A DNA stretch of 63,725 nt, the filler included, from Perkinsus chesapeaki ATCC PRA-425 (taxonomy: Eukaryota > Protista > Perkinsozoa): the NCBI GenBank assembly GCA_013115145.1. It is 9 parts of 9 records of this genome, joined end to end, with 100 filler letters (N's around TTAATTAATTAA, not from the genome) between each part and the next. Parts side by side here need not be neighbours in the genome. Positions count along the whole stretch, not along the records: positions 47,691 to 59,522 come from JAAPAO010000836.1; 8 more parts are not named here. The stretch is one strand, 5' to 3'. Below are positions 10,014-59,522 of this stretch, piece by piece; within the stretch, counting starts at the first letter, position 1, and each line of letters begins with the position of its first letter. Both the position numbers and the translations under genes were made by a program. The notes below the pieces were generated by a model, which saw nothing but the letters and a program-made list of their open reading frames with translations, searched no databases and was not told the origin of the DNA.

Positions 10014-10809
10014 ACTATTATCATGTTTCTCAAAATACTTGTCTTGAGCTGCCAAGTCGGGTCTAGTGGGAAGTGAAATGTGACTGGAATGACTTGTGGG
10101 GCGAGAACACACTTGTCGAAGCCTCGCTGAAGACTGATGATGTGATAGCATGCCGAGAGCATTAACCCGGCTGAGAATCACTGAGCTCAGTGCAAGGCAC
10201 CCAAGAACCTCGGTGCATAACTCAACTGATATAATTGAAGAATCCCTCTCACAGTATTAGAATGGGTGAAGCACGACACGATCCAAAAGTTTACCGTAGT
10301 CAATATCTCCGGTTTACCAGTGGCTGTCCCTAGCACTAGCGTCTTTGAGGATTTCGTCGGCGTCTGTTGAGGTTTACTCGCAAATCTAAGTCGATCGTCA
10401 CCTTCCTGCATTGCGATTTTACAAACGTTCTCGAAGGTGACTAGCATCAAACTGATCAACCTAGTCGAGGCCGAAGCAAAAGTCTAAGCCGTACAAGCTC
10501 TCAGTGAGGATAAGCTCCGAACTGACTTGGGAGTCCATCCCCAAACACGAGTGCTATAAAACGTATTCGAAAGACGGCGAGGTGTTACCTATCAATCGTC
10601 AGACATTCGATAAAAACCTTTGTGTATTGGATGGAACTTCATATTTTCCGTCGACTCAAACACGACAGGATTTGTTGAACTCGTCAATCCATTCATGGAA
10701 ATCAGACAGCTTCATATCAATATCGACCAACATGTCGATTAATAATAGGTATATACAAGAAGGGTCGTCTAATGAGTTACTATCAAGCAGAAGATGTAAC
10801 GAACTCACC

Positions 10810-13950: not shown

Positions 13951-15503
13951 TTGATGACAAGCTCGACTAGCTTGTCGGGGCTTGTCCATCATGTATTAGA
14001 GCCTTACGAGGGAGAGTTTTCCCTGGACTCCTAGGCTAGTAGTTGCTCGTGTTCTGTTCTGAGTTCCACGACATTTTGCCGGAGGTGCAAGTGAAGCTGA
14101 CTGTCAGTTACTGACAGTTCACACTGATTCGATGCATTGCAGTGGCACTGCAGTAGTGTCAATGTATTACGTAGTTGGATGAATAGTGAAACGATTTGAA
14201 AGTGAATCCGTTGAGCATGATTCAGACTTATTGATTCTCGGTCGCAACGAAGTAATGAGAAGCAGTGAAATGGGGCAACATGACGACATCAGGTCGTCGA
14301 CCTGGTTATTGCAAGATAGAGAAATGAAGCGTTAAAGGTATCCTGCCATTGGCAGCAGGTCAAGAGTGGTATGAATGTATCCAACTTGAATCCTGTCAAC
14401 ATACGAAGGCACTGCCGCTATTATTGTGTGCAGGAGGTCGTCCAGTAGTCTTACAGAAACGTGTGTCTTTCCTCGGGGAGGCAAAGTGTTCCTAACTGAG
14501 TTGGAATGGAAACTCTTTTAAAACATATTTTCCTCGATTAAAGGGAAACACCAAATGCATTCCTCCAGAGGACATGGTTCTACAGTGACTCCCTGACTGA
14601 GTGGACTTACTTTGGCCTCTTGGCTGACCTTTGGTCCTGGTGTCAGTACTGCACCATGAAGCGGGGCCTCGACAATTGAAAGCGCTGGAATCTCGTGAAA
14701 AAAAGAATTTCCCTTTCTGGTGGATACTACCGAATTGGCGTCACAGAGACGCCGTCACTATTCGCAATTCACGGATCGTCAATGTGATTGCGTTATTCGC
14801 GATATACACCTCTGTCGAATGTAGTCTTCTAGTGAGGATGACACTAGCGCTTCTTTTTCATGCGTAGATTACGAATTGTAATGACGCATTACTAATGAGT
14901 CACTTCTAGATATTGTCCCAGAGATGCTGTGTCACGGAGACAATGTCCCCCAAAGTAATTGCCCATTGTCCTGCTATACATAGCGTGGAACTACTCTGTA
15001 ATACAATTTTTTAAACGTTCCTCAAAGTTATGCTCTGTCTTCAAAATTGTATTCTATTGGATTCGGCTCACTGCTTGTAGCTGAAAACTAGGGGATACTA
15101 AGCCAGGGTTCGTTTTTCTAAAGCTCCGCCTTTCAGAGGGGAGCATCTGTCCCCAGTCTTTCAATTTCATGCCGACTCCATTGGATGGAGGGAACGGCGC
15201 TCGATTATGATGCCCCGGTAGTTAACTTTAATGCACTGTTGAGCAATGAACTGCAGTCGGCGCAGCGGGATATATCCTACATAGGTTGGATTCGCGATAA
15301 CGTGCTTCAGTGGCTGAGCAAAGCCACCAGGCAGATCAAGGTGCGTAGACAATAATAGCGCCGCTTCCTCCGAGTACATTGTTTCGAGAAGCGCGGGGTC
15401 ACCGCGAACTCCACGGCATGGAAGTACAAAGCTCGGGTGTTCTAAGAGATACGTGAATAAAGTGACTATTCAGCGTTTCATCATTCTAAACCTCTGATAA
15501 TCC

Positions 15504-16613
15504 ATGTTCGATTACAGACTAATGGTTACTGCCATTTACTTGGCAAGCCTGAGCAGTGTGGTGTATCTGGTACGCAGTGAGATATCTTTGTCTTTCACCG
15601 AAAATAAAGTGACCGGGTTGTCCTTCGATGGTCAGCCATTAGACTTATATTCCGAAACAGCCATTAGTGAAACTCTAGTTATATATAAAGACTGGTATGA
15701 GAAGACCTATGGTAGATGTCCGCCTAAGACATGTTATACTTGCATTAGAGAATGCTACCCCTACAATAGGGAGAGGCACATCGTACATTCACTTGACGGC
15801 AGTACACTCACCACTGTCCTTCATCATGGTACTGTACAACTCGACAAACATCAGATCGAGATGAATTTCCGACTTATTATAGGATGGTCTCCAGGTCCGG
15901 TCCGAGGGGGTAATCTGCCTGTGAACTACTTGGGGTTGGCATTCTATAAAGGTTCACCCGATGAGAATTTTCTAGGGCAGCTGTTCATCAAGAATGTTGT
16001 ATCCGAGAGAAGGATATCTATATGTGCACCTAGTGATCCTCAAACCTTCACTGGTACGATTATACTTGGCAAAGCTGTGAAGACGCAGTGCAAAATCCTT
16101 AGTACTCCCATAATAAGCCTTCCGGCGGGATCATCCGGGTTCCTTGATGCAAGATTCTTGGTTCTTGGGTTGGATTTCTTAGACGGCCACCAGTTTGAAG
16201 AGTATCCGTACGCTACTATAGCTGCCATCGATACAGGAGGTCAAAGCATCGGTTTACCCAAATATTACTTCCAGATGATATTGAACATGATTACCGAAAG
16301 TGCTTCAGGCTCCCCCGTTTATGTTAAAGTAAAAAATGATGTATGGTACATTCAACAGAGAGGGCGAGATAGCTTTCCTACGCTGATAATTGGCCTCGGT
16401 ACCTTCGACAGGAACGTAGTTGTCAAAATCCCGGTGAAACGCTATTTGGGAGGCTGTGATGGCACTTGGTGTCGTCTTCTACTAGTTGGCCACGACTCTC
16501 CATATATATTACTTGGCCGTCCCTTCTTAACAAGCTCATTTTCTTCATTTGCGGAGGATCAGAGAGCTCAAAAAACAGTTACATTTGCTCATTACGACAG
16601 GAGAGGTGGTTAA
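15504..16613 (+). CDS. Secreted pepsin-family (A1) aspartic-protease-like protein with degenerate first catalytic motif
   Basis: Intronless 369 aa; signal peptide; GQPLDLYSETAISETLVI at the first DTG position; Cys flap; SLDGS; second motif AAIDTGGQSIGLP; C-terminal ILLGRPFL. Confidence 0.85.
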   Translation: MFDYRLMVTAIYLASLSSVVYLVRSEISLSFTENKVTGLSFDGQPLDLYSETAISETLVIYKDWYEKTYGRCPPKTCYTCIRECYPYNRERHIVHSLDGSTLTTVLHHGTVQLDKHQIEMNFRLIIGWSPGPVRGGNLPVNYLGLAFYKGSPDENFLGQLFIKNVVSERRISICAPSDPQTFTGTIILGKAVKTQCKILSTPIISLPAGSSGFLDARFLVLGLDFLDGHQFEEYPYATIAAIDTGGQSIGLPKYYFQMILNMITESASGSPVYVKVKNDVWYIQQRGRDSFPTLIIGLGTFDRNVVVKIPVKRYLGGCDGTWCRLLLVGHDSPYILLGRPFLTSSFSSFAEDQRAQKTVTFAHYDRRGG

Positions 16614-17908
16614 AAGTAATAATGAGATGTAATCCATGCTTTTAGTTATCGTTTTTATAGGCACTGTTGTCTATATGAGTTTTAAATTTATAAATTTGTT
16701 ATCAGACTTCATGTTAGCAATAGTCGCTTCGTGTAGGAGCCCAAGATTACGAGATTAGCTGTATGTGATGTGGTCGATTTGTTGTTGATGATTAGCTGTG
16801 ATACATCACTGCTGTTGTTGATTGTATGAGGCTTTTTAGAACGGTTTATACTTAGAGTTTTTTTCATAATTGTTGTCGCTCGGTCAAACATTATCACTAC
16901 GTCGATCACTGCGATCATTCATCAGAACTAGTGTTGAGTTAGAAGGCGAAGTCTCGGTTCATGGTTACATCCACAATCCGCCCAAGGCCGTGCCGCCTGC
17001 TTCGCGGGCAAGTAAACAATCCTCAAACGTCGGTTAGCGACTTCCCTGACTTGATTGCAGGAATTGAACTCTCCTAGCTAACCCGACTCGAGTTCGCTTA
17101 ATCGTGCTGCTTCTGGGGAGCCCGCGGGGATCTCATCGCCTTGAGCAATTGTATAGGGGATCTTCTACGGCAAGTACGTCTCACTCTTCCGAAGAAAGAT
17201 CTACGGCTGCTACGCACTTGCCGGCGTTTGACCAGCGCAGTCTTACGCTGCGTAAGCTGCATAAGTCATACACACCACGAGCTAGTAACATAATATTGTA
17301 ATATATCAAATATTTATATACAGGATGCATAAGAACTAAGGGCCCACCCACGTAATTTCTCATACCAATCGAAAGGACTCGCTAGATTCTACAAGACGGT
17401 ATCCTTCTATAAGGGGCGAACCTTCCTTCGTTTTATTGCTGACCACTATGAGCACTCACTATAAGAACACGGTATCCGTAGAGTGGTCGAAACCTTCATG
17501 GAAATAGCACGTGATTCAGACGTAACACTAGGCAATGCAACGGTAGTAGTCTACGTGGAAGACCACAGTGTGGTTGTTAGGGGAAACTAATCACTTCAAT
17601 TACTTCAAACGACAGCAAAAGGCTGAGGGATCGACACCCGTGCCCTTAATATAAGATATATAAAGATATATTGAACAGCAGTGAATGAGTAGTGTAGTAA
17701 AAATGATAGTGATGTCGAAAGATACGATACAACACAGCGTTAGACGGAGACGCTGGAAGCTGTTAGACGCTAATTGTGGTTATATACCAAATACATCAAA
17801 TAGATACGGTATTGCTTCGACCGAGCACGCGAGGGGTAAAGAATTGCCTTGCTGGCTCGAAGTCAGGAGGCTGTAGTGCAGCTTGAAGGAACCTAACCGT
17901 ACACAGTA

Positions 17909-20900
17909 TCAACGGCGAGTGTAGCCTTGGGGGTACTTCATGAAGGCCCTTGAAGAGTGAAGGTAGCGTCGTAGGGTTGAGTAATGACCATGGTGATCTG
18001 AGTGGCGGACAACGTAACGATAGATCTCGTCAGATAGGCATGGATCAATGGGCAAACCTGCAGACAGCGGATACGGAGAAACGCTAGACTCTGGGGGATC
18101 TACATCGATAAGTGACAGCAGCAACGAACTCAGAGAAACCAATGTGGCCTCGCCCGTCCTTCCGAAGTTGAGCAACAATTTCTCTCGCTGTCTCTGTGTT
18201 GGAGTGGCGAGCGAACGCCTAAACCGGGCATTCAGGCATCACCACACAAGTTAATTGCCGGGCTCACTCTCTCAAGCTCATCGTTGCTGATGTGACCGTG
18301 AGTTGGTGAGGCGAGTTGCAAAAAGAAGCGGCTGAGTCTTGAGGAGTTGGACCCAACAGATGTTCGTGATGCCACCAAGCGATGAGCCTCACGCTGCTCA
18401 TCATCAGCTCCAGCGAAACTGAGTAGACCGCTAGGCGCTATCTTTGTCGTGTTTCAAATCTGACTTATAAGCTGCCTTGAAGAGAGGCTCGGGTATCGGA
18501 CATACAGCACCAGTAACCTACACAGAGTCTGTGCTGCTCGGCGCTATGGTGATGAACAGACCATTCCCGTGGGCCTTCTCAAAAGTAGTTCATGATGGAC
18601 AAGTTGCGGAGCTGAGTACCGCTGAGCCTCGTCCCTTTGCAGGCATCGGTAGACAAAGTCGCCAGCAGCTGGGTCGATGCTGGAGACCTTACAGGTAGGT
18701 TATCACACCACTGTGGGGTCGGGGTAGACCTACGCAGTTTCTAATGGCGGCATGCCAAGGCTGTTTGCTGTGGTCATGGTAGTCTGATTGTAAGAGTATG
18801 TTGGTGAGCTCATCAACATTGCTGCATTGGAAGGGGAAGCTGCCGTTTGTAAACAAGCTGTACCTGACCCTCCTGGGCTACTTGGACCAATACAAGTGAA
18901 AAGTTATTTACGCTACAACACCAAGGGACCAGGAATCACAGAGCAGGCCGAAGTTGCGCTCGAACACTTCTGGGGCTGCATACATAGGGCTGCCTTCTGC
19001 CTGAAGCGGCCGTAGCGATAAAACCGCACTGTATGTAGTTCACTTTCGATCGGCGTTCCCTCGGATCCGATAAGGTCTCAGCGAAGCCAAAGTCAAGCAG
19101 TGTGACACGCAGTCTTAGAAACCTATCGCAGAGAGCTACATAAACAGCTGCGCTCATTGACGACCTGGAGCTGTGCTCTGATGGGGAGGTAAGCTCTGGG
19201 GGATGGTGAGACGAGCACGGGGAGGAAGGCTGATGCTGCTGCATTCGTAGACCATTGACGACTATGTTGCACAATTTAATGTCCTTGTGGATTATCTAGA
19301 GAATGCCACTGCCAACAGAGGGCCGAGCAGAGGGATACCTTCCGGGAATAAGTATGAGCAACAGCAAAAGTGAGCTGATGAACAATCTCAACAGCCTCAT
19401 CAAAGTGGATGCAACTGCCTTGTGTCTTGGCGGTCTCGAGGGCGACACTAAGGGTTATACCGGGCACCTGAGTAGCGTGACGTGCGTCACAACTGGCGTG
19501 GAGATGTACTCTATCCATGATGATGTGTATGCCAGAAGGGCCGTGAAAGTACCTAAGTCCGAGGACTTAGGTCAAGATGATGGCCTTGTTCTTTACTCGT
19601 GCATTTTGACGATGCATGGATGGTCTAATGAAAGCATCGCTGCAACCTCTCCAAGCAGCACCACTCCCACACCAGAGGAACATTTTTGGGCGTTGGTTGA
19701 TATCGATTTAACTGAGATGGATGCTGCATGCCGATTAACATCCAAGTCTCCCACCAACACGACAGCTCCTGCTCGGCATGGCCACAACATCAGGAGACTT
19801 CCGCGGTCCGAGGGCAGTGCTTCCTCCATGGCGCTGCTGTAGGGGTGTATTATGCACACCAGCTGATCGCTGACCGAACGGCCATGTCGCTCAGGGCGAG
19901 GAGGCGCTACTTGTCTCATCATCCGCATCTCATGGATATCCTTCGGGCTGGTGGCACCTGGCATGGCCATCGGTGTGGCCAGATCAGCTGGCCGACGGAC
20001 ATTGGGCCAACAGAAACGGACTGTACCATAGGCTCCACCGCCAACACACTGATCAGATACCTGAATGGCAAGTGACATGCGAGACCAGCCGTGGCCCAGG
20101 CTACTGTGTAGTATTCCTTCAACCTTCTACCAACCACAAGGGACCCTCGACACTCCCTCGATGCCAGTGCATCGTACAGCAGCACGAGAATGCTCTCAAC
20201 TGCGCCTGTTGGCCCTAATGCAGGGAAGCTATGCCGCGAGAGAGAGCAAGCAGTTACCGTATTCTGAACCGTCTCGTCTGAACCTCGACCAGAGACGCTC
20301 AACGGCTGTGTCCGGAAGAGTCGACAACAGGGAGTTGTAGTTGCTGTTAAGAAGCCTCCCTTGCAAGGAGGACCGCAAAGTGCTGCAGCTGAGCCTATCA
20401 ATAATTGCCACTACAAGTCTACGGAAGCTAGCAGGGGTGGTAGGCAACCTATCAGAGCTTCAGGTCGCTGCTGCCACTGTGAGCCGCCTCACCCATGTAA
20501 GGAGACCTCTTCGGCCAGTCGGAGCAGTCTTCTAGTATGAGACATAACTTCACCTAGGACACTACGGAAGGTATCGATCTCGCTGCTGGTGTGGGTGGCA
20601 AAGGAGGTGGTCTTGGCCCGCATGAGGAGGTGACCACCTGGGGATGTAGCGAACGGCCTTGGAATCGAGGAGATCGCAGTGCGTTGATGTTGTGCCTAGA
20701 AGACTGACGGTGGGCTAGGACTGAGGGAGCCGGCTCTGACTACATCAGGGGTCATCGACGGTAGAGTGCATTCAGAAGGTATCCTGGGAGATGAGCCTGC
20801 ATCACTAGCATCCTCCTTGATAACAAAAGATACCTGCCAAAATATAGCTTGCATTTACTTCGTAAGAATAGACAACGACGAAAATGCCAAGCCAGATCTA

Positions 20901-47690: not shown

Positions 47691-48304
47691 CTGTTCTAAT
47701 CTGAGAGTAATCCTAAGCTTTTCAACATATGAAACTGCCTAGCGGAGCGAAGCGATCGCTACATTTGTCCTAAGGCGGAGCGAAGCGATTCATGTTTCAC
47801 ATTTTGTTTTCTTCATCTCCAAAGCTTTTCTGCTGGCATTTAGTCATCAATCTAATAGTCCTTTGTCTCTCTATACTATATCGGTATGCAGTAGGGCCTC
47901 AGCCCTGACTGAGTGGGCTTACGTGAGCAGTAAACGGGTCGAAGGTCTTCGCCCGGGTGGCTAAGTGCCGAGCGGTCGACGGATACCAGAGTCATGTTCG
48001 TTGAAGAAGTTGTTTTAAATGACTACCAGTCGACGAAAGAAGCCCACTGGTCGGTATGGAGCTACTAATACGAGAAGTCGAATGAAGGCGGCTGCTATGG
48101 AGGCGACAGGAGATAGCAGCCCTACTACAGCGTCGGAAAGGGTAAGGAGGGACGGGCAACGTCGCTTATTGGACTGAGCTTTGGTACAGCTATCAGAGCT
48201 CTTTCTTGGTCTTAAATGCTTTATACAGTTCAAGAAGAGTACACTATCAGTATCTCAGTTCTATATAGAGGTTAATACTATATCTGAGGTTAGGGCAGGA
48301 TGCC

Positions 48305-49354
48305 TTGTGGTGTACCGTTACTGCTCAAGGGCAGTTGAGTAATATAAAAAATGATGGTACTAGTAGCTTTTATTGGCCCTTATATATTATATGGAATAGC
48401 GTTCAATATGTTGACTGTTCTCAGAGGGAGGCCCCCAGTGTCGATGCCCTCTTCCATATGGTGGCCAACAGTAACCCTAACCGAACAGATGCCTCCCTCT
48501 ACGGTATAGTAGCTAAGGGGGCCACCGACAGTGTCAAGTCCCCGCCGCCGTCTATCGACATTGAGGCTCCTGGGCGCTCCGAGGACAGGCCTAGCGCGGC
48601 ATCAGTGACGGACAGTCGAACCGATACCGCGCCTACCGTAGCTGAAAAAAGGAAGCGGGGTAGACCGCGGAAGGAGGGGATTGGCGGGCCAATCGAGCCA
48701 GCTGCCAAGCGGCCGAAGGCGGTCGTGGACAGGTCTGTCCATGAGATTAGAATTACGTTATCATCACTGCGGTTGCTACTCGCTGAGTACTCTAGGCGGC
48801 TTCGGTCTGGTCAGCCGGTGGACTTTGAAGAACTTCGGACGGCAATTGGGGAGAGGATGGAGCCCTGGGACCTGTCCGCGATCGATCTTGAATATATCGT
48901 CACTGAATTCACTGCTATTAAATATAGGCCTAGCCTGGGGCTGGTACTCATGGAACGCCCTGGTGCATTTCAACCTTCTAATAGGGCAGTCAATCGAGCT
49001 GGGATATCCGAGGTTGGAGCGAGGCTTAAGGAACTATGGAAGGAGCACAGGACGAACACCCCCCTGACCGGAGAGAATGTGGCTGCTGATCGCATAAGGG
49101 CAAACGGGGCGGTCCGATGGCTTCGTGGATGCACTACGGCAAGCACTTTGAGCTCTACAGCTTGGGACTTCTGGGCATCGTCGACGGCGGTGGCACCGTC
49201 ACCGATCAGACCCAGCGGCATCACGAGACTGGCGTCCCTGAGCGCGGCTGTGATGGGCGATCTTAGTCCATATGGTTCGGAAGGCGGGCAGAGGTTCTCG
49301 ACAGGGATGGTGTCTCCGGTGGTTGGTGGTGGGATATTCGAGCCGATATTCTGA
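48305..49354 (+). CDS. Hypothetical nuclear protein with AT-hook
   Basis: Long ORF containing KRKRGRPRK and PAAKRPK, followed by a helical region. Confidence 0.5.
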   Translation: MWCTVTAQGQLSNIKNDGTSSFYWPLYIIWNSVQYVDCSQREAPSVDALFHMVANSNPNRTDASLYGIVAKGATDSVKSPPPSIDIEAPGRSEDRPSAASVTDSRTDTAPTVAEKRKRGRPRKEGIGGPIEPAAKRPKAVVDRSVHEIRITLSSLRLLLAEYSRRLRSGQPVDFEELRTAIGERMEPWDLSAIDLEYIVTEFTAIKYRPSLGLVLMERPGAFQPSNRAVNRAGISEVGARLKELWKEHRTNTPLTGENVAADRIRANGAVRWLRGCTTASTLSSTAWDFWASSTAVAPSPIRPSGITRLASLSAAVMGDLSPYGSEGGQRFSTGMVSPVVGGGIFEPIF

Positions 49355-49474
49355 GGCTTCATTGAGTTGACTTGGTCATTGCAGCCGACTCGTATACTAG
49401 ATTTAATTAGTAACCCTTCTAAGGGGCATGTTGCAGCACTCCTCCTTATTGGCAATACCATTACACTGCTGACA

Positions 49475-52400
49475 ATGGAGCAGCTTATGTCGCTTGGTTG
49501 TCGTTGTGTTGAGCTAGTTGTTGATAACGTGGTGCAGATTGATTATTATAATGATCCCCTACCTGCCCTTCGTATCTAGCATTGGGGCTTCTACCAAGAT
49601 ATCCCTCTGTCTCTTCGGCTCAGTGGTGCTGCTCGTCATGTTCGTAAGGCAGATCCTTAAGCGTAAGGAGATCAGAGTTAGTAAGCCCTCAGCACGGCGG
49701 TGGCATTCCGATCCCGTCCTGGTTAGATACGGACAAATGGGTCCAGGTGTCGCCGGCGACGGCCAAGAGCAGACCGGTCCGGGTGGCCGTCATCGGCTCT
49801 GGAGTCAGTGCAGCTGCTACTTGGTCAGCGCTTCGCTCCGTCGGATTTTGTCGTCGTATTTTACTATTTTGTCAGTCACTACACTCGCTCCCTGTTCGCC
49901 GATGATAAGGAAGTGTCCCTCACCGTGTTCGAGATGGGCGCTGGCAGCGCCGGACCGATCGTGGACTTTGATGGAAAAAAGTAAGGTGCCGGGATCGAAC
50001 TTGAGACCTATTGTACATCGGGTTTCCGGTTTCCATCGTTCTCCATACCCCAGTGGATAACGTTTTTCATTGGGGCAGGGAGAGCCGATCGACTTTGTAA
50101 AAAATGGTTCCACTTGAAATGATTTTCCGAATCGATTGTTCGAGCCCATCCCATATTGCCCTGCGCAACACTGTCCTGGTAGTGGAGCAAAGGAACTTGA
50201 GAGTGAGCTCATCGACGTCATTAGAAAACTTCGGCTGTCTGCTTTGAGGTGAGGTTAGGTACGAAGCCGGTCACTCGATCATCGCTGACTACAACCAGAC
50301 GATCAAGCGATTGTGCCTCAAGTTGGGCGTAACCCTCCGATCTCTGCTGCCCGGCAATCCTAGTAAGCCGCGGCCGGATACGATTGTGTGCAGCTGTCCC
50401 CTTCTCCCAGGCATTATGCTCCACAACGGTTCGTATCCCTCATTCCAGTCTATGGGCAGGGCTCTGTGGGATATGTTATCATCAGCGTGGCGCTATGGTA
50501 TCCAGAGCCCCATTGAAATGAGACAAACGACAACCGGATGTAGGAAGCAGTTGCTGAGCTAGGTTGGCCATTGCATCTGTACAGGTGTACTTTCCTTCTC
50601 TAATATTTACCTCCTACAGCAGCACGGATATGTCTATGATGAGCCAATGGAGCTGCTGAAGGGCATGGCTGCTGATGGAGATGACTTCACCAGCATTATC
50701 GATAAGGAGGTAAGTGTTGGTAGGGTGATTTAGCCCCAGCAGTTGGACAGTGTTGCTAGTGTTTGCCGTAGCCTATTACGGACTGAATGAAGTCGATGGG
50801 ATCGATATGACTAATACTACAACTCCGCTGTGGCACTGCTGCGGCGGCAGCTGGGTACTGGATTTCGCATTACCGTAGCAAGCCAGTGGCGTTTACATAT
50901 TATCTGCACCCATCGAAGTCGGCGAATTTTTCTCTGGTGCTCGACTAGCAAGACTTGGCGAGGAGCGGGTTTTGTTCATCACAGAAAATTGTCCATCATC
51001 ATACGGGAGGAGACCCGCTCGAATGACTGGAGTCCAGAATGGGGATGTGCAGCTCGTGACATGATTGATAATATCTTTGAAATTACCTGTATCATTTTGT
51101 CTGAGCTGTTCGCTTTCTGTGATACGAGCTCACCTTGCCATCTTTGTCGAACTACGAATTCTGTGCAAGGAACCCAGACCGGCTCGCCGAGCCGGGCTCG
51201 GACATCTGGATGTTGATGACGATTCTAGGACGCAATTGGATCAGAAGCTTTCCTCCACCCAAGAGAAGGCAGATTTACCGCCTCCAAGGATTGTTTCGTT
51301 ACCGAGCTTATCCCCCCGTAGATTAACCGGTATTAGAATACTGGCGATCGGGATGTCCCAACACCCACTACTGTTGAGCACGCGCTCTCCTTCGATTATT
51401 GTATTTCTCTTTACTATTATCAGGCCAGAAGTTACCTTATCAACGATCGTTGCATCAAAGCCCCTCTGGTAGATGACATCTGCACTGCTAGTAATAGCAT
51501 TACCCTCGCAGCGTCACGGCGTCACAATTGGTTACGCAGGTCTTCGCTATCTTTATGGTTTGGACTGCAAGTCTGTTAATGGTCTATGTGCCAATATCGC
51601 CATGGCCGATATCGAATACAAGAATCTGTTCACACCTGTCGGGGGTGCAGAAGCGGTAGGGATTCTCAGTGGTTAAAGTTCGCAAATTGCGGAGCTAGTT
51701 GCGGAGGGCATACTCTCACTCTACTAACCCTCTGTGCGTGCGTGCGAATAAATCACCCAGCTCGATGATCTAGAGGGGTTATGATCACAACCTTTGCACC
51801 AATCGATAGCTCTTACTCTGGGGATACTAGGAAGAATACGGAAAGTGGGTTCTGATCATATCTTGAAGGTTAGCGGGATAAAAAATACTTTTCTGCAGAA
51901 AAATGACAGGCCTTGGGATCGAACTTGAGAGCATCTAACAGAATCTACTGATGATTCGCCGAGCTCCGTCCCTTTTCAAGAAAGCCTAGTATTAATTGGT
52001 TGTTAAGTAGTTATAAAGTAATGTAATTATATAGAAGTTCCAGTAGTAGTAAATATTAATACAGTAGTAGTTAATATTAGTACAGTAGTAGTAAATATTA
52101 ATACTCGGGCACCAGCTTACATCGATTCTTCAGGTCACCGGAGCGCTGTTGGATGACAGTGGAGCTAAAACAGTTAGCGGTCGAAGGATCACTGCTATCT
52201 CTCGAACCGAGGAAGGCGGGTTCATGCTCAATGGAGATGATGAAGCCAATGAGTTCGATGCCGTTGTCATAGCGATGCCTGTGGAGAAAGCGGAGAAAAT
52301 CGCTCTGAAGGGTGGGGCGGAGATTAATTTTTCTTGTCTTTATTTTGGATGGTCAGATTCCGACGGTAAGAGTAGCAGCCTGTTTGATACGTCCAGCTGC

Positions 52401-53474
52401 AACTGCGAGACTAAGACGATTTACCAGCATTTCGTGCAGGGGACAGTCAGTCCGTCTATAACGAAGGTGTAAGTTGAGGCTCTATAGCGCGTTCATTATG
52501 GGAGATCCCGGGTTCGATTCCCGGCCCTGGCTTTTATTTCCTGGAACTATATGTTCTTGTTCAGGGCTGGCCGTGTACCAGTACTTGTGTCGACCACTCA
52601 GACGGCTGCGGACAACAACCTTCCCTGGACCTCTATTGAAGCTGCAGTAGGGAGCTTTGGGGCTAGCTGTTGTTATGTTGGTAGTAGGTCCCTGTTGGTG
52701 CCACTGAGAGGGATGCTGAGACGTTACTGGCCGAGGCGAGCTGTGGGAAGGTGTCTAACTGGAAGGTTACTGCACAGGAGAAGTTGGGCAAAGATGAACT
52801 GCAGAAGCTTGTTATGAGGTAAGACGCTGATGATAGCACATAAGCATCGACGTTACGAAGGCATAGTCCTAGGAATAATGGGCAGGAAGCCTATAAGGAT
52901 GTAGGCAATAATACGTATTATTGTATACTTATCGCCTTGTACTATAAGGAAGAGCTAAGTGTGGTTCGATACATTACTGCATATAATAACGTAAACCAGA
53001 AATCGCATCAGAGCTCATTGGGCTATGTAAATATAAATTGATTGTACTAAGTGAGCTGTTTTAAATGAAAGCTTAGCAACTAGTCTACCGTACTTCATAA
53101 GCAATGTGGATTAGCCGAGCCAAATGCAAACGACTATTGCCCACGGTTTTCTGACACCTCTAGCTATCCTTATTCCCATCAGTCTCCCTGGTTCCCCTGA
53201 TCCCGTCATTGTCGACACTCATTGTCCAACCTTCCCCGTTAACGATAAGCTGCCTCCCTTCAAGCTATCAGATGGTATATTCAGTACAGCTGCCATGGGC
53301 AGGACCGCTGCCGATATGGAAATGGAGTGCATTGGAGCTAAGAACTCGGCATTGTTGGTCCGCAAGTACCTAAAGGCGAGGGGCCTTATTGAGGCGGAAG
53401 ACATTCCAGCAGCTCCCGTTGAAGAGAAGGAGGAGGAGGAGGAGGAGGAGGAGCCAGTGAAGCCGCTGGAGTAG
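49475..53474 (+). CDS. PCYOX1: Prenylcysteine oxidase-like FAD oxidoreductase, multi-exon; start approximate
   Basis: VRVAVIGSGVSAAAT (FAD motif), VFEMG, DGKK|YEAGHSIIADYNQTIKRLCLKLG (cf. YEAGGSVIHPLN), LRYLYG..LFTPVGG, FDAVVIAMP, AADMEMECIGAKNSALLV (cf. SAMEMSAIAAHNAALL); poly-E tail. Confidence 0.8.
49987..50008 (-). repeat. tRNA-derived B-box-like relic in a PCYOX intron
   Basis: Minus strand GGTCTCAAGTTCGATCCCGGCA then a T tract; lies in intron 49981-50257; shares 16 identical nt with the copy at 51909. Confidence 0.5.
51909..51932 (-). repeat. tRNA-derived B-box-like relic in a PCYOX intron
   Basis: Minus strand CTCTCAAGTTCGATCCCAAGGCC followed by T-rich sequence. Confidence 0.5.
52041..52104. 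repeat. 21-bp tandem repeat x3 (intronic)
   Basis: cagtagtagtaaatattaata, three copies, the middle one with two substitutions. Confidence 0.9.
52478..52538 (+). repeat. Internally deleted tRNA-like relic in a PCYOX intron
   Basis: GGCTCTATAGCGCG...GGAGATCCCGGGTTCGATTCCCGGCC then TTTT; perfect T-arm (CCGGG/CCCGG) but no anticodon arm. Confidence 0.6.
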
Positions 53475-53658
53475 CTGTTTATACTGTTTAGCATCATCAT
53501 TAAATCACTGCTATTGTAAACCTCTTACTGTTCTATAGAATCCTTTATCAGCTGACAAGAAGTTTCTAACACACGAATGGTTTTGGGCAGGGGCGCGGTG
53601 TTGGTTAATTTTGTGGCGAGTGACGACGATTGATGGGAAGGATTGTTTGTAATATTGC

Positions 53659-56544
53659 ATGGTGACGACCCGCTCTGCTTGGGCCGCACGACGACTGTTA
53701 ATGTCTGGTAGGCTATTTTTGTGGCGCGCGAGAAATGCCTGTATGGTTTTACAATCAGATCCTCTAGGGGACCCTCCCCGAATCGCCTCTCCGCATTTGC
53801 CGGTGCCTCGAGTGATGGACTCGTCGCCGTCCAGCACGTGTTCGGCGAAACGGAAGAGTCCCGATAGTGAAGGTCTGTGGGAGACTAGGGGCTGCTAGGA
53901 TGCTCGAGCTCAGATGAAAGTGCAATGCCAGCCAGGCGTTCGGCTCGACTATGTAGCTTTGAAAATAGCGAATCCAACAGTAGCAGCCCAGGGGAGGTCT
54001 TGGAGAGGGCGACATGCCTGTCCCAAGGTGGTCTGCTGATGACCGGCTGGTGGTCAATGGATGATTGTTGTAGATAGCAGCGCGACTGCGGCGAGCGCAC
54101 CGCCGCCTCAATACGCTTTGGGGCCGCCATTGCTCCCCATCACAGAGAAGGGGGACTTCACACCACGCCCTGGTGAGATGCTTGTTACGTCTGTCTCTTT
54201 TGTATTTCTAACGAGTTTTCATTTGGCACCCGAAATAGCCGTCATTGGCGACAAAAGGAAGTCTCTCGTGGGGCACTCGATGACGTTGGTTGTTGTTTTT
54301 CAACACGCTTTCAATCGAACTGCGCTACGAATTGATCTAAGGAGGCCACCACAGTGTCGGGATCGCCTTCTGTCTTAGGATTCGTCGGGCTTGTCAACCT
54401 CGGAAGCACCTGCTACATGAACGCAGTCATCCAATGCCTACATGCCATATTGCCTCTAGTGACATACCTTCTGGGAGGGTGAGGGCGTTGAGGAAATGCA
54501 AGATTGCAAGATTTACCTTTGTCGTATCAGGGAGCACGAGTTGAATGAAACTAATCCTCTGGGAACCGGTGGGGACATATTCCAAAGGTGCGATCAGCTT
54601 GCTTTGGGGAAGGCGGTATCTCGCATTTCAGCTTCGCAAGATTGCTCTCGAGCATGCGGTTAGCGTCCAGCTTGGAGGCCATTGTGCCGAGGGAATTTAA
54701 AAAAGCGATAGACAATCACATGGTGGCGTTCAAGTGGGATACTTGCTTTTGGAGAGCTCGAATCGGTTTGCAGGGGCACCGGTATCCAGCATGATGCTGC
54801 TGAGTTCGCCACGGCACTGTTGGACAAGTATGCGAGGACGGTGGTGTCGTGCAGAAAAGGCGGGTGTCAGGCTCCACGAGGATCTCAATCGGGCAGCGAT
54901 GTCGAGTGGCGAGCCACCAGAGACGCCGGAGTGTACCATAGAGATGAGTGAAGAAAAAGGGATTGACAGGATCGCCGCAGAGTTCTGGAAGTAGCCGGGA
55001 GTTGAGCCATGGGGCGGTATGGATTCTGGTAGAGCCCAGCTGGCCAAGAACCAGTCTATAATTGTTGACCTCTTCCAGGGACAGATGCGCTCGGTCTTTA
55101 AATGCAGTTCCTGTGGGCATTCCAGGTGGGGAGGTCTCCTGGTTGGGTTGTCAAGCTCCTCCGCTCAGAGTGGTGTTTGAAGCATTCAATTCCCTTATCT
55201 TACCAGTAGAGGACTTCCGCGGGAAGCCGTTGACTGACATTTACGATTGTCTTCGAGAGTTTGCCCGTCCTTCGGATCTGTCGGGGGACAACGGTTGGTA
55301 GGCAAGGCTAGCCTGCAAGGAATGCCTGGACCGGCAGCCGGCAGGTACTGCGCGAAATGCAGCTCCTTATCGGACTCGACCTGCAACACAACACTGTGGA
55401 AGCTGCCGGGCATTCTAATGGTGCAGCTAAGACGATTTAAACAACTTAGTCCGACACGGTGGAGCAAAAGCAGCCATCATGTAGGCGGTCAGTCGGTGGC
55501 TTTGCATAGCATAAGACGGGCGTCTGGAGTATAATAGAAGGAACACCGAGGAATCTTCAGCGAGGATACCATCAGAAAGCGCTTCCTGGGATTTTTGACA
55601 AGATGATGCCCCATAACACCGTTACAGTTCCTCCCAACATTAAACAGTTCACTAATGCTAATAACTTCGCGGGCGTCACCCTGAGACTCTTCGTACTTAC
55701 GGCCAATGCCTATTCCACGTACTTGTCTAGGAAAAATGTACACTTCTTATACTGCTCGGGGGTCCGCTAGAATTGCCATCGGCACAATAGTGGTTCAGCT
55801 TAAGTATCCGGGACCAGCCTTGTTGCATAAAATCCTCGGCGTTACAGGTGCATTACCCCACCAAGGAGCCTTTGAATCTGGAGAAGTTCGTATCTAGGTC
55901 CCACCAACGGGACGCACCAACCTATAGATTGCTTGGAGTTCTCCGCCACAAAGGCCTCATGTCGTAAGTCTTACCATAGCTGTATGACTTGGAATCTTCT
56001 ACACGGTAGAGGAGGACACTACACCGCTTTTGTGAATCACGACAAGACACTGTGGGACCTGAAGGGCCATGAAAAGCCGATCGATCTATCGCTGCAGACA
56101 CCCCGGCGGGCTCCATTTCACATGGGTAAGATATCCCCTATTGACAGGCCTTGTATGGGCGGTTTAGGGCATCATATGGACCCGGAGAGCCCAATGTCCA
56201 GGGTAGTGCTTGGGTTGGTACCGTGTTCCCCTAATGGTAAACAGCTTGCTATGTTGACCATGGTGATGTTGTGTGCACTGTAGGGTGGTGGTTCTTCGAC
56301 GATTCTACTGTTCATCCTCTACGGAAAGAGGCCCTCGTCGATTCCCGAGGTAAGTCAAACGCTCTGATGGGTTACACTGAATGCGCTAGATGCCTACATA
56401 CTATTTTTCGTTCGATCGGGGACACCAGTAGACCACAAGATGATCCCATCTCAGCGACATAACAAACCGACGGATTGGCCTCATGCTTTTGATAATGTTG
56501 CGTCACCGTCGTCATCGTTGTCATCGCCAGAGGAAGGGCTATGA
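53659..56544 (+). CDS. Ubiquitin-specific protease (peptidase C19), multi-exon
   Basis: Cys box GLVNLGSTCYMNAVIQCL; QHDAAEF; SIIVDLFQGQMRSVFKCSSC; YCAKC..LWKLPGILMVQLRRF; His box GGHYTAFV; WWFFDDSTV. Confidence 0.92.
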
Positions 56545-57798
56545 TGGGCAGTTCTGTTTAACCTTGCCGACTAGCAGCTACTGTTGTCGATTGGCTTTCT
56601 CATTCTGCTGTATTCTTTATTAAAGCAATCACCAGGTTGATTCATTTACTCAGTACCAGTGTTGCGTGGTATAGTCACATAAAGTTGGGAGAAGAGCGGT
56701 ATGAAAAGGTTCAGGGAACGAAACACAAAAAATCTCCGCAGTGCGCAAGGGAAGGATGAACAACCGCAAGACGAGCGAGAGAACAGCGCGCTGCAACATC
56801 CGATATCTGATGCGATTTTGATATAGCGGTGGCCGGAGGAGCATCTTGCTAAGCTTCTATGTGACCACCTACAACTGTTCTTGGTTCTTCGGTATGTGAT
56901 GCCTCATTAGTGAACTTTGGGCCATTTATATACGTACTATGACGCCAGCTATGGGGCCCTCTCAGACTGCCGAAGATGATGGGTTAAGAGATGCCTTAAG
57001 CAATACTGGTGAGTATCTATCGTCCACGTGTGTAAGATACCATTTAGCTCCGTTCGCTTTAACTTTCAATTTGCCCTATTTATTTTCGCTCAGGCGTGGA
57101 TGAAGAACTAGAAAACCAATTAGCCAGTAAGGGATCGAACGCTTCCTACTCTACGGCCTCAAAATCTCGTTGATTTCAGGAAGTTGTGATGAAGCTCATG
57201 GGCCAGCTCCATATGGAGTTCCGCGTGAACTTAAGAAGACATTAGTTTCCGAGAGTGAGCCATCTACCGCTGCTTGCATGGTCATTAATATTGCTCATCC
57301 TTTCAGTAATGATTGTAGACGAAGATAGCTTTAATATGAAAAGTAGGTCCAACTGAGAAGCGCTGTGATGTGGAAATCAGATTTTATTGGTAGCACGAAA
57401 GGCCCTCTTGGGTACCATCTGAACTCCGCTGACACCCGCTTACCTAACGAGAGTGATGCCCTAATCAGTGAGGGTAGATCCTAGGCCCGTCGCACTGGTA
57501 CGGTAATCTGCTGCTCAGATTCTCTGCTGGATGGAAATGCTATGAGATCACACGCTTCTATGTCATCTACAGCATTCTACTCTACTGAAGACGCTGGCCT
57601 AATAGGAGGTACGAAACTGTTGATTCGGCCACTTTAAATTAAGCTGATCCTCAGGTACGCAGTTCTCCTTGACGTCAGAGCAGCTCGGGCTTGGACAAGT
57701 GAATCCAGGTGAACAGCCCAGAAGTTGCGGTGTAGTTGAGCCTCTCAGGTCTCGCACATGCTCCTAATATATCGGATATGATATCACAGAGGTCCGCG

Positions 57799-58343
57799 AT
57801 GAGCGACAGGGGTAGGCTGATGGCTCCATCGTTATCGAATGGTCTGCCTTCAGCTAATGAGAAGACGAACAGGAAGACGAAAGCAGCAAGTAGAAAGAGT
57901 GAGAGTGGAAGTAAGTTATTCCCGTTGGAATGGTTTTATTAGCTCCGTTACGATCTTCTATATGTGCATTTGGCTTACTTGTCCGAGGCTGTTTATCTGA
58001 AGTTTATTTAGTGCTTTGTGCTTCCTCATACGCTCTTATCCACGTTGGTCGTCTGCGTTCCCGGCCTTCCGTTTGCAGCATTTTATCGCCAGCTGCTCTC
58101 ACTTCGCCTCCGTCCCCGCGCCGATTTCGGCAAGTATTTCCGTGCACATTTAGGCCCCGAGAGTACTGCTACCCCTTCCAATAGGAAACCGAAAGGAAGG
58201 AACAGGAAAAGTGAGTCTGTTTGAGATCTGTGTGGATACCTAGTGGTCTTTTCCCTCAGGTTCGGCTGGTGCCAGCTCCGCCAAGTCGACCGGAAAGCAA
58301 TCGAAAGGGCGCAAGAGGAAGGTCAGCGGAGACGAGGATCACG
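57799..58343 (+). CDS. K/R-rich upstream exons predicted to splice into the Rep ORF
   Basis: Three exons (about 57799-57898, 58079-58210, 58260-58343), all with phase-1 GTGAG donors and pyrimidine-rich acceptors, mutually in frame and in frame with the acceptor at 58600-58601 in the Rep ORF. Confidence 0.5.
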
Positions 58344-58519
58344 GTGAGAGCGACTGTGTTACATAGGAGGCGTTCTCGCTTGGAAAATCCCTGCTGTTTT
58401 TCAACGAGGAATCCCCATTGGTGTCTTTATATAGTTTTAACGAAAGAATAACTGATGATCGCTTCGACTTTACTCTCATGAACCTCTTATACCACAGCCG
58501 TTAGTGCTTCGGTTTTCGT

Positions 58520-59522
58520 GTGGGGAGCGTTCTTATACGCAATAATGTAGAATCTATGTTTATGGTTATCTATGAGGAACGACTAAGCGTGAGTGTTTCA
58601 GAAAAACCGGACACTATCGAAATCAAGGACGCATCCTTGGAAGAACTGAAGCGCAAACAGTCACGGTCATTCCTATTTACATGGTCGCACACTGAGGACC
58701 CTGACAAGGCCAAACCGTGTGACATGGAGAAACCAGAGATCAAAAAGATTATAGAGCAAGTCATGGGAAAAGACTTACTCTACTTTTCCATCTTCTTTGA
58801 GAATCACAAAGACGGAAATCGCCATGCCCACTTTGTCTTGAAATATGCCAAACCGAAGCGCTGGAAGCTCATGGCTGACCAGCTTCGACGGGAATATAGA
58901 ATGTTTTGTTCGGTGAGCGTTGCTGAAGACAAGTCCGGGGCTAAGTCCTGCATGTATCCGGTGTTATTTGGGTACTGCTATAATACCAACCCGGAGAAGT
59001 CCCTGTTCGATGTTGACCTCGAACCTTATCTCTCACCTGACCATCCTGCCCCCACCACAATCGGCCTTGAAAAGCCTCGGGTGATCTCTCAAGCGAAGCG
59101 CGTCCGTGCCATGAGCAATAGCGCGGTTCAAGCGTTCGTGATTAAGGCTAACATTAAGACCGAGAAGGAGCTCTACGCGTACGCCAACCGTGATCCCGCT
59201 TTAATGGAGTTTGTGTCGAAGCAAGGCGACTTTCAAGGAGTGGTCGATAAAGCATGGGAGATACATAGAGCCCCAATGGAGCTGATAGAGGATAGGAAAA
59301 CTCCACTGGAGAAGGTTAAGGACTGCCTATCAGCTGAATGCAGCTGTAGCTATTTTGGGATGTGGGCTGAGAAGGTTTCTGTTGTGGTGGAGAGGAACCT
59401 AAGAGAAGAGGGAGCACAGCAGTTTAAGGATGACATTATCAGGAATTTGCAAGTTGGTAGATCGAAGCAGACCAACATTCTGGTATATGGGAGGGCTTCT
59501 AGTGGTAAGAGCGCGATATTCA
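58520..59522 (+). mobile_element. rep: HUH endonuclease plus SF3 helicase Rep (CRESS/parvo-like endogenous element), 3' truncated by gap
   Basis: Motif I SFLFTWS; motif II ENHKDGNRHAHFVL; candidate motif III GYCYNTNPEK; Walker A in SF3 context GRSKQTNILVYGRASSGKSAIF. Confidence 0.85.

Follow-up and report, generated by a model that had tools for sequence, protein, structure and literature searches.

The genus Perkinsus consists of shellfish parasites, and P. chesapeaki is a relative of the oyster parasite. I analysed a stretch of 63,725 nucleotides, filler included, joined from nine parts of the genome of P. chesapeaki ATCC PRA-425 (GCA_013115145.1), hereafter the window. Positions 47,691 to 59,522 come from the contig JAAPAO010000836.1 (11.8 kb), in which spliced cellular genes lie upstream of an ORF for a Rep protein. 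A Rep combines in one protein an HUH endonuclease that nicks and joins DNA and a hexameric helicase of the SF3 type. The ORF occupies positions 58520 to 59522 on the + strand, is stop-free over 334 codons, and is still open at the contig edge at 59522. The genes and features of the locus are as follows.

48019 to 49354, + strand: called gene of 383 residues, no Pfam family
49551 to 53474, + strand: spliced cellular gene for a prenylcysteine lyase
53743 to 56544, + strand: spliced gene for a ubiquitin C-terminal hydrolase (UCH), which precedes the Rep gene in P. marinus too
56951 to 58343, + strand: upstream exons and introns of the gene model FOL47_010610, predicted
58344 to 58601, + strand: phase-1 GT..AG intron directly 5′ of the Rep exon, predicted in the gene models
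58520 to 59522, + strand: Rep ORF (HUH endonuclease and the start of the SF3 helicase), first ATG at 58556
58602, + strand: start of the last exon of the annotated gene model, which carries the Rep ORF
58652 to 58999, + strand: HUH endonuclease domain, about residues 45–160, from the AF2 model and Foldseek
58670 to 58687, + strand: motif I, FLFTWS, with T54 invariant across the family alignment
58799 to 58834, + strand: motif II region, E-N-H-K-D-G-N-R-H-A-H-F, with E94, H96, and H102-A-H104 (HUH)
58955 to 58999, + strand: motif III region, with Y146 and Y152-C-Y154
59102 to 59488, + strand: helical linker/oligomerisation region together with the N-terminal portion of the helicase domain, from the alignment and AF2
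59489 to 59512, + strand: Walker A (P-loop), GRASSGKS, with G324 and K330 invariant across the family

The first-pass annotation, made from the sequence alone, had read FLFTWS, motif II, a candidate catalytic Tyr, and Walker A in this ORF, and all of them are present on the + strand at the positions listed. E94, H96, H102, and H104 are all invariant in the family alignment and retained in P. marinus. In the linker and early helicase segment, W282, G313, R314, and N319 are family-invariant. Walker A ends ten bases short of the edge at 59522, and the remaining helicase lies beyond the contig end. Thus, the window copy's own helicase, including Walker B, motif B', motif C, and the arginine finger, is out of view.

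Homology and predicted fold of the Rep protein

A family HMM was built from 46 relatives, with the window sequence excluded. It matched the window ORF at 107.4 bits in a single stretch covering residues 44–332, while the best of 500 shuffled ORFs reached 9.2 bits; the match is therefore far above chance. The ORF also matched the relative P0002 at E = 2e-13, and BLASTP gave a match at 5e-20. At the DNA level, no similarity was found between the JAAPAO010000836.1 piece and the relatives' loci.

Searched alone, the window ORF reached the curated threshold of no Pfam family, and searches of PHROGs and of PDB sequences gave nothing relevant. A PDB profile search with the family alignment returned weak Rep matches only (E from 0.017 to 0.06). 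Among 30 family members searched against Pfam, REP_ORF2-G2P matched 20 and Gemini_AL1 matched three (both at E ≤ 0.01), while PPV_E1_C matched 13 and Parvo_NS1 seven. On the P. marinus ORF, PPV_E1_C scored 18.9 bits, under the cut-off of 26.5. The first-pass annotation had named the lack of any HUH or SF3 profile match as the result that would speak against its reading; this lack holds for the single sequence, but not at the family level, where both domains are recognised. Membership of the window protein among HUH endonucleases thus rests on transitive homology through its relatives and on the predicted fold.

In the AF2 model of the window protein, the block-mean pLDDT is mostly 77–90 over residues 41–130. 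The HUH domain is modelled as a beta-sheet plus helices, with a Tyr-bearing helix at residues 146–155. Foldseek with this model returned almost exclusively Rep and origin-binding domains, with modest E-values of about 1e-3. The Rep of TYLCV was matched with probability 1.00 and a TMt of 0.65, and further matches were WDV, PCV2/circovirus, vientovirus, AAV Rep68, pMV158 RepB, and the origin-binding domains of E1 and LTag. A full-length model of a relative (pLDDT 91) matched AAV2 Rep68 at E = 2.4e-14 and the E1 helicase with a TMt of about 0.67, as well as AAV Rep40 and B19V NS1. In BFVD, the same model matched NS1 and E1 at 1e-16 to 1e-15. The predicted SF3 fold and the SF3 profile are thus seen at the level of the family and the orthologue only. 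The first-pass annotation had noted a resemblance to parvovirus and papillomavirus helicases upstream of Walker A; at the family level, the helicase side does stand closest to NS1 and E1, both by profile and by fold. Taken with the host contig, the family HMM and the fold place an HUH endonuclease and SF3 helicase Rep in perkinsid chromosomal DNA, as first proposed.

An orthologous locus in P. marinus

Is the gene found in other Perkinsus species? In P. marinus, the orthologue (P0206) lies directly after the UCH gene on an 85-kb contig and is a complete ORF of 470 codons. A second P. marinus haplotype contig (625 kb) shows the UCH-Rep arrangement again, and the loci of the two species are collinear by blastn and tblastx. 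It was thus found that a single Rep locus is orthologous between P. chesapeaki and P. marinus. Just downstream of the P. marinus Rep there are partial Rep-derived pieces, followed by cellular genes, with a CRAL_TRIO gene coming after a partial duplicate; the locus has thus undergone both duplication and decay. Length-limited, word-based protein searches returned no homologue from P. olseni.

The intron predicted in the P. marinus gene model agrees with that of P. chesapeaki in position and in phase, and both models have a canonical phase-1 acceptor predicted 23–25 codons ahead of motif I. In P. marinus there is no in-frame ATG upstream of motif I. The N-terminal extension of FOL47_010610 is basic and of low complexity, and cannot be aligned with the P. 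marinus extension.

The two proteins share 180 of 318 residues (about 57% identity). Nucleotide identity by codon position is 0.64, 0.72, and 0.36 for the first, second, and third positions, respectively, with a pS of 0.87, which is saturated, against a pN of 0.30. The third positions are thus randomised while the first and second are conserved, and the ORFs of 334 and 470 codons are stop-free. The Perkinsus Rep bears the signature of purifying selection.

The Glu, His, and HUH metal-binding residues, a Tyr in the helix of motif III, and Walker A are common to both species. The P. marinus orthologue also retains the Walker B Asp, the Arg following it, the motif C Thr, R421, and a C-terminal CxxCF. 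Y152, on the helix at 146–155, is conserved in both sequences, while the family Tyr is equivalent to Y152 or to Y154 depending on the alignment, one of these two candidate positions being Phe in P. marinus. By eye, the catalytic Tyr had seemed lost in P. marinus, but a second alignment places the family Tyr on the shared Y152, which makes such a loss doubtful. The Lys of the YxxK motif, present in 44 of 46 family members, has been replaced by Asn in the window and, in one alignment, by Arg in P. marinus. Since this Lys is not conserved in Perkinsus, nuclease activity is not assured.

The neighbours called in the two species comprise cellular genes and Rep-derived pieces but no capsid gene. No homologue of a DDE transposase was found in the P. 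marinus loci or in the JAAPAO010000836.1 piece. Between 56400 and 59522, a search for palindromes and terminal repeats gave only inverted repeats of at most 18 nt, no more than chance would produce. Two pattern-based, non-exhaustive scans of IMG/VR confirmed no viral relative; the first of them was uninformative, as its candidates were checked against the truncated ORF. I found no paper naming the Perkinsus loci or a Perkinsus Rep.

Distant relatives paired with a Tc1/mariner transposase

Starting from this gene, a large family of Reps was found in marine eukaryotes, which travels with a Tc1/mariner transposase and not with a capsid. At E ≤ 1e-30, 935 clusters of relatives were found, from marine metagenomes and Polarella. 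They lie mostly in multi-copy units of 3.6–4.8 kb. In 25 of 27 relatives' loci, a convergent Tc1/mariner DDE_3 transposase gene is located beside the Rep gene, 0.4–1.2 kb downstream. Ends of the type TA|CAAT...ATTG|TA were found in the loci L007, L012, and L006, and nothing comparable exists upstream of the Perkinsus ORF. The terminal units are 214–265 bp in length, with TA duplications. They form hairpins in L007 (z −12.7) and L012 (z −8.5); hairpin termini are not universal, as L006 has a z of only 0.3. A Polinton-like virus was considered for the relative P0017, whose neighbours include an rve integrase, a Pox_A32 ATPase, and a PLA2-like gene; these are absent elsewhere and only the transposase recurs, so this candidate was dropped as a neighbour effect. 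The putative mobile elements are distant relatives found elsewhere, and the Rep in them is paired with a DDE transposase rather than alone.

I found no description of an element with a Rep and a Tc1/mariner transposase in protists. It is quite possible, though somewhat less likely than not, that the Perkinsus Rep is a domesticated descendant of very abundant, apparently undescribed protist mobile elements that combine an NS1/E1-like Rep with a DDE transposase of the IS630/Tc1/mariner type. The element class proposed as part of this reading, to be taken as equally provisional, would have long and often hairpin-forming ends, TA duplications, and no capsid, and would be multi-copy in Mb-scale eukaryotic contigs. 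If this is true, each element would unite an initiator of replication with an integrase of the cut-and-paste kind, and the elements could be a cellular reservoir that supplies the Rep lineage of parvovirus-like and E1-like initiators, or one that this lineage has escaped into. The debated route linking CRESS-type Reps, parvoviruses, and E1/large T would then gain a cellular, transposon-borne branch, which, if real, is open to study from sequence data that are already public.

Origin and retention of the Perkinsus gene

The Rep ORF is probably the large exon of an ancient endogenised Rep, kept as a co-opted host gene of Perkinsus. It would descend from a small DNA replicon's Rep gene that entered the lineage before P. 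marinus and P. chesapeaki separated. The remainder of that replicon would have been lost or never present, and the predicted intron and the basic N-terminal extension would have been gained. Retention under purifying selection points to co-option. Since the motif residues are conserved, the protein most likely retains, as judged from sequence, the ability to recognise a specific DNA site, to nick one strand by means of the Tyr, and to unwind DNA at the expense of ATP. Candidate host roles are a transaction on host DNA at hairpins or at sites that resemble origins, or the control of related mobile elements. Perkinsus thereby gains a conserved gene derived from a mobile element, which no annotation names. 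As a dated, syntenic Rep retained by a protist, it offers a clean case for asking what use a cell has for a nicking-helicase initiator.

The first-pass annotation had offered two other origins, an endogenous ssDNA virus and an undescribed class of rolling-circle transposons. Neither is supported in Perkinsus, the former in the sense of a provirus: beside the gene there is no capsid gene, terminal repeat, hairpin, or transposase, the single locus is orthologous in the two species and bears the signature of purifying selection, and the predicted intron is shared. It had also noted that Helitrons pair HUH with an SF1 Pif1 helicase and that Replitrons lack a helicase. The gene is neither: both profile and fold assign its helicase to SF3, which departs from the former, and the presence of a helicase at a single locus departs from the latter.

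A variant of co-option, in which the protein is nuclease-dead and kept only for DNA binding and helicase/ATPase activity, as in E1 or large T, is unlikely but deserves consideration. The origin-binding domains of papillomavirus E1 and polyomavirus large T are inactivated HUH domains, and both are among the fold matches. The replacement of the YxxK Lys by Asn and Arg would agree with such inactivation, as would the disagreement between alignments on the equivalent Tyr and the Phe of P. marinus at one of the two candidates. On the other hand, the metal-binding Glu and His, the HUH histidines, and the Tyr are lost in E1 and LTag, whereas the Glu, the His, both HUH histidines, and Y152 are kept in both Perkinsus species. 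It is improbable that the window holds the left edge of a still-mobile or recent element, either Rep plus transposase or virus-like, whose remainder lies past the contig end. The contig does stop inside the Rep gene, and the relatives have their transposase 380–1160 bp downstream of Rep; however, the complete P. marinus locus has no DDE homologue and passes through Rep-derived pieces into cellular genes. Moreover, no terminal repeat or palindrome lies upstream of the ORF, identity to the relatives is 19–32%, and the locus position and the predicted intron are common to both species.

Similarly, there is little to commend a neutrally decaying endogenous viral fragment, a pseudogene open by chance. 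The lack of a direct Pfam match and the fragmentary state of the nearby P. marinus copies would suit it, yet both ORFs are open although synonymous sites are saturated, codon positions 1 and 2 are 64–72% identical against 36% at the third, and the family-invariant catalytic residues are retained. A free virus or a contaminant contig of non-Perkinsus origin, co-sequenced with the host, was the outcome that the first-pass annotation had said would overturn its reading. Nothing beyond the viral-type nature of the gene favours it. The 11.8-kb contig bears spliced cellular genes, the independent P. marinus assembly has the same arrangement on contigs of 85 and 625 kb, and the two pattern-based IMG/VR scans confirmed no relative. 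The synteny with P. marinus already refutes this explanation, which has practically no probability left.

How does the co-opted Perkinsus gene compare with known systems? Rep-like genes that are conserved, expressed, and possibly co-opted have been reported from eukaryotic genomes (Liu et al. 2011, PMC3198968). The Perkinsus gene resembles them as an intact, apparently retained small-replicon Rep in a eukaryotic chromosome. The hosts in that study do not include Perkinsus (0 occurrences), and its Reps are circovirus-, nanovirus-, or geminivirus-like and detectable with Pfam, whereas no Pfam model is reached by the Perkinsus protein, a member of a distinct family with a helicase closest to NS1 and E1. 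In the Perkinsus case, there is orthology across two species with a predicted intron common to both models. The Tuber melanosporum 'geminivirus-like transposon' is repeated and has a Rep-like ORF and transposase ORFs between TIRs; its Rep is of the geminivirus type, its TIRs are 37 bp, its ORFs are broken, and it has no obvious target-site duplication (PMC3198968). It sets a precedent for the Perkinsus gene's relatives, with Rep and transposase in one unit, although the relatives differ in their NS1/E1-like Rep, intact convergent DDE_3, TA duplications, and 214–265-bp ends. The Perkinsus gene itself differs from it in having no transposase.

In Helitrons, the Rep has two Tyr and is fused to a Pif1 helicase of SF1B, while Replitrons, which occur in multiple copies and have short direct repeats, encode a one-Tyr Rep and no helicase (PMC10288648). 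Both resemble the Perkinsus case as HUH endonuclease genes resident in eukaryotic genomes. In contrast, the Perkinsus Rep is of the one-Tyr type with an SF3 helicase, at a single locus with no sign of mobility. Parvovirus NS1, AAV Rep68, and papillomavirus E1 give the best fold matches to the family model and have the same plan of an HUH or origin-binding domain, a helical linker, and an SF3 helicase, but sequence identity to them is only 10–20%. On the HUH side, the Perkinsus family is by profile nearer to REP_ORF2-G2P and Gemini_AL1 than to NS1/E1. Unlike the NS1 and E1 viruses, the Perkinsus gene has no capsid gene or terminal hairpins; it is chromosomal and predicted to be spliced. U94 of human betaherpesvirus 6, at rank 29 among the fold matches and likened by fold alone, is also a Rep68/NS1-like single gene in a larger genome, its host being a herpesvirus and not a cell.

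Identity of the window Rep protein

The FLFTWS, HUH motif II, candidate tyrosine motif and Walker A described in the first-pass annotation were all present in the window ORF, as follows.

Rep ORF of the window and the motifs within it
58520-59522, plus strand: Rep ORF, 334 codons without a stop and open at the piece end; first ATG at 58556
58670-58687, plus strand: motif I, FLFTWS
58799-58834, plus strand: motif II, E-N-H-K-D-G-N-R-H-A-H-F
58955-58999, plus strand: tyrosine-rich stretch with Y146, Y152 and Y154
59489-59512, plus strand: Walker A, GRASSGKS, ten bases short of the contig edge

The helicase past Walker A is off the contig. When the relatives and the window ORF were aligned, T54, E94, H96, H102, H104, Y146, Y154, W282, G313, R314, N319, G324 and K330 were invariant. 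The catalytic tyrosine is Y152 or Y154, depending on which of two alignments is used. The YxxK lysine, found in 44 of 46 family members, is an asparagine in the window Rep.

A missing HUH or SF3 profile match had been named beforehand as grounds for rejecting the assignment. As a single sequence, the window protein indeed matched no Pfam family, no relevant PHROG and no PDB sequence; homology searching with relatives overturned this. Besides P0001, the annotation of this very contig ([quoted passage not shown]), the first protein search gave P0002, a protein of 451 aa from Tara Oceans contigs that is 28% identical to the window ORF from the HUH motif to Walker A (BLASTP 5e-20). P0002 matches PPV_E1_C above the Pfam cut-off, REP_ORF2-G2P slightly below it and Gemini_AL1 more weakly, and as a query it retrieved 38 relatives. 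Among 30 family members, REP_ORF2-G2P was matched by 20, PPV_E1_C by 13, Parvo_NS1 by seven and Gemini_AL1 by three. An HMM of 46 relatives, with the window ORF left out, matched residues 44-332 of that ORF in a single stretch at 107.4 bits, while none of 500 shuffled ORFs scored above 9.2 bits.

The AF2 model of the window protein has a mean pLDDT of 74, with block means mostly 77-90 over residues 41-130 and 62 at residues 61-70. Its PDB matches, at a modest E of about 1e-3, are almost exclusively Rep and initiator origin-binding domains: among them TYLCV Rep (probability 1.00, TMt 0.65), WDV, circovirus and vientovirus Reps, AAV2 Rep68, pMV158 RepB and the origin-binding domains of E1 and large T. 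The full-length model of P0014, another relative (pLDDT 91), matches AAV2 Rep68 over both domains (E=2.4e-14), and also papillomavirus E1 helicase (TMt about 0.67), AAV Rep40, B19V NS1 and SV40 large T. In BFVD, papillomavirus E1 and parvovirus NS1 are its top matches (1e-16 to 1e-15), with CRESS Reps slightly lower. Thus, from the relatives' profiles, the HMM score and the fold matches, the window protein is a genuine HUH and SF3 Rep. The proposed likeness of its helicase side to parvoviruses and papillomaviruses holds at the family level, in the PPV_E1_C and Parvo_NS1 profiles and the P0014 model matches.

The Rep locus in two Perkinsus species

The Rep-bearing piece is the entire P. chesapeaki contig JAAPAO010000836.1. 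Three genes precede the Rep gene on its strand: one of 383 aa, then spliced genes for prenylcysteine lyase and for a UCH ubiquitin hydrolase. A length-shifted protein search returned the Perkinsus marinus protein Pmar_PMAR022755 (P0206), 58% identical over the Rep part. On an 85-kb contig, its gene comes directly 3′ of a UCH gene; the genes beyond it are cellular, CRAL_TRIO among them. The identical UCH-Rep arrangement occurs on a second, 625-kb P. marinus contig, which is most simply the other haplotype. In blastn and tblastx, the UCH exons and then the Rep region are collinear between the species, with tblastx identities of 59-74% for Rep segments and 59-88% for UCH exons. Judged from these sequences, the Perkinsus Rep is one orthologous locus that predates the split of P. 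chesapeaki and P. marinus, and a free virus, a contaminant and a recent insertion are ruled out. No DDE transposase, capsid-like neighbour, terminal repeat or hairpin was found at the Perkinsus loci.

The P. marinus Rep ORF is complete (L088, a P. marinus contig, 12821-14233; 470 codons; 194.5 bits; family-profile positions 9-447) and retains the Glu, His and HUH residues, a Tyr, Walker A, the Walker B Asp, the motif C Thr and a C-terminal CxxCF. Over 318 aligned residues, the two species agree at 180. Nucleotide identity at codon positions 1, 2 and 3 is 0.64, 0.72 and 0.36, and pS is 0.87 (saturated) against a pN of 0.30; this pattern indicates a protein-coding gene under purifying selection. 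Neutral DNA equally old would not have kept frames of 334 and 470 codons open.

In both P. marinus haplotypes, there is no in-frame ATG from the upstream stop to motif I, so that a complete HUH domain requires an upstream exon. Two independent annotations predict a canonical phase 1 acceptor 23-25 codons 5′ of motif I in both species (58601/58602 in the window; about 12872 in L088). The spliced models were inspected one exon at a time. The N-terminal extensions of these predicted models are basic and of low complexity in both species and cannot be aligned with each other. The P. marinus model exits the Rep ORF at L088 14158-14233, just short of its natural end, and ends about 0.8 kb downstream. 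The unspliced ORF runs on through the family's conserved CxxCF; thus, the modelled 3′ end is probably incorrect.

Partial Rep pieces lie on the same strand as the full P. marinus copy, annotated within a "505/520-aa" gene.

Partial Rep pieces (profile matches) and direct repeats in P. marinus
L088 16842-17321, same strand, downstream: helicase-only piece
L088 18636-19067, same strand, downstream: HUH-only piece
L089 (a further P. marinus contig) 17918-18229 and 18413-19024, same strand, downstream: two pieces, profile positions 36-131 and 238-448
L088 8679-8806 and 14734-14864; 9150-9500 and 16423-16611: direct repeats

The direct repeats show that the pieces arose via a 6-7 kb segmental duplication; the extra copies are incomplete through deletion or rearrangement. 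Between the Rep copies is a nested, MITE-like palindrome about 330 bp long (L088 15916-16245; 80-nt arms, 88% complementary, 76-nt loop). The P. chesapeaki contig end (59489-59522) falls within about 30 codons of the start of the P. marinus helicase-only duplicate (family-profile position 310 versus 280), and a repeated segment may have caused the assembly break.

The Perkinsus gene is probably a Rep that was endogenised long ago and has been kept as a host gene. With both catalytic centres still largely intact despite long divergence, I consider that the protein would still be a DNA-site-specific nickase with a coupled ATP-driven helicase. The main mechanistic rival is a nuclease-dead protein like E1 or large T, to which the missing motif III lysine points; against the conserved catalytic residues, it seems distinctly the less likely state. 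That the gene marks the edge of a live element is improbable, a decaying pseudogene is marginally more so, and a free virus is hardly credible; synteny, the selection signature or both contradict each of these. The first-pass observation is confirmed and its interpretation supported in part: the HUH and SF3 Rep is genuine, but neither an endogenous ssDNA virus in the sense of a provirus nor an undescribed rolling-circle transposon class in Perkinsus is supported. A co-sequenced free virus, its own refuting case, is contradicted by the UCH-Rep synteny of an old orthologous locus. The retained Rep is a further example of the endogenous Rep genes already known.

Distant relatives and the Rep-transposase unit

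An exhaustive profile search yielded 5,165 cluster representatives at E<=1e-3 (the weaker of which may include other SF3 proteins), 3,053 at E<=1e-10 and 935 at E<=1e-30. The Perkinsus proteins are 19-32% identical to the compared members (median 25%; best E=3e-41, full length). Being roughly equidistant from all of them, they form a divergent side branch.

On three long contigs, the gene following Rep converges on it and encodes about 363 aa. The partner ORFs of L007, L006 and the short contig L002 all match DDE_3 above the Pfam cut-off, and two of the three match HTH_Tnp_Tc3_2, indicating an IS630/Tc1/mariner-type transposase. A metagenome scan found a homologue in 38 of 80 further loci, always on the strand opposite to Rep. 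Where 1.5 kb or more of sequence downstream of Rep was available (27 loci), 25 loci have it there, at a distance of 380-1160 bp. The recurrent unit, Rep (plus) with a convergent DDE_3 transposase (minus), measures 3.6-4.8 kb. No capsid-like gene was seen with these units, and IMG/VR held no relative within the limits of a pattern scan. One 90% cluster has 50 members on many contigs of up to 1.3 Mb; thus, at least one large eukaryotic genome carries multiple copies of the unit.

Units and palindromes in relatives
L007 8406-12180; L012 1033-4996; L006 9394-13730: Rep-transposase units
L008 2205-2490; L047 2179-2458; L051 2412-2648; L060 2290-2506; L084 1016-1227; L048 1847-2093: examples of the palindromes 3′ of Rep

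The two genes of L007 are flanked precisely by a perfect direct repeat of 214 bp. Its outer ends read TA|CAAT...ATTG|TA, and stretches of about 15 bp inside the two copies match each other in inverted orientation. The ends of L012 (265-bp repeat, within a 10.7-kb contig) and L006 (230 bp), where the direct repeats are likewise perfect, are identical in type, and one simple repeat runs on at both flanks of the L006 unit. As a DNA hairpin, the terminal unit of L007 folds at -69 kcal/mol (z -12.7) and that of L012 has a z of -8.5; that of L006 shows no hairpin folding (z 0.3). The terminal units of L028 are inverted rather than direct (228-476 and 4576-4789; 217 bp, 95%). The short-read contigs L013, L018, L026 and L048 overlap exactly at their ends by 99-123 bp, giving periods of 3.7-4.1 kb, and are therefore circular or tandem, which assemblies cannot separate; L002 is similarly bridged by L003. 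In many loci, a second palindrome of 100-300 bp lies between the convergent genes, immediately past the Rep stop. The TA-flanked insertions would be due to the transposase; amplification and the circular or tandem forms would be due to Rep acting on the structured palindromes, whether terminal or intergenic.

The L006 (9040-9395, 13731 onward) and L007 (8380-8405) insertions both lie in (CTAGCTAC)n-like simple repeats, which could be target preference or coincidence. Near its unit, L006 also carries an inverted second transposase copy (14251-15633) and a long short-tandem-repeat array inside a called 932-aa ORF (17132-20480). The 2.3-kb contig L023 has the Rep gene only, between 147-bp inverted ends (1-147, 2137-2283; 99% identity), and represents either a derivative with Rep alone or a fold-back of the assembly.

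Polarella and known systems

Besides Perkinsus, the dinoflagellate Polarella glacialis is the sole named cellular source of relatives. In gene models its Rep genes are SAM-domain fusions, with no transposase. In contig L090 (CAJNNW010001700.1), they lie in 8.8-kb tandem units (99.5% identity), and every unit has a full-length Rep copy as well as one with the helicase only (10550-11830, 19348-20628 and three helicase-only segments).

Rep-like genes in eukaryotic genomes, Perkinsus not included, are known to be conserved and possibly co-opted, and a "geminivirus-like transposon" of Tuber melanosporum has a Rep-like ORF, transposase ORFs and 37-bp TIRs (Liu et al. 2011, PMC3198968). Helitrons and Replitrons differ by definition from the HUH and SF3 Rep described here. 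In the literature, of which coverage was incomplete, I found no account of the Perkinsus loci, of any perkinsid Rep or of a Tc1/mariner transposase in combination with an NS1/E1-like Rep. The Rep-transposase family may be a new form of an already known kind of element.

Directly 5′ of the unit in L005, positions 1776-9768 hold dense small genes, an rve integrase, a Pox_A32 packaging ATPase and a weak parvovirus-type PLA2 match. Seen at this contig only, the block looks like an integrated Polinton-like virus. HUH genes are known in some Polinton-like and Mriya-like viruses, which may explain these L005 neighbours but not the recurrent unit.
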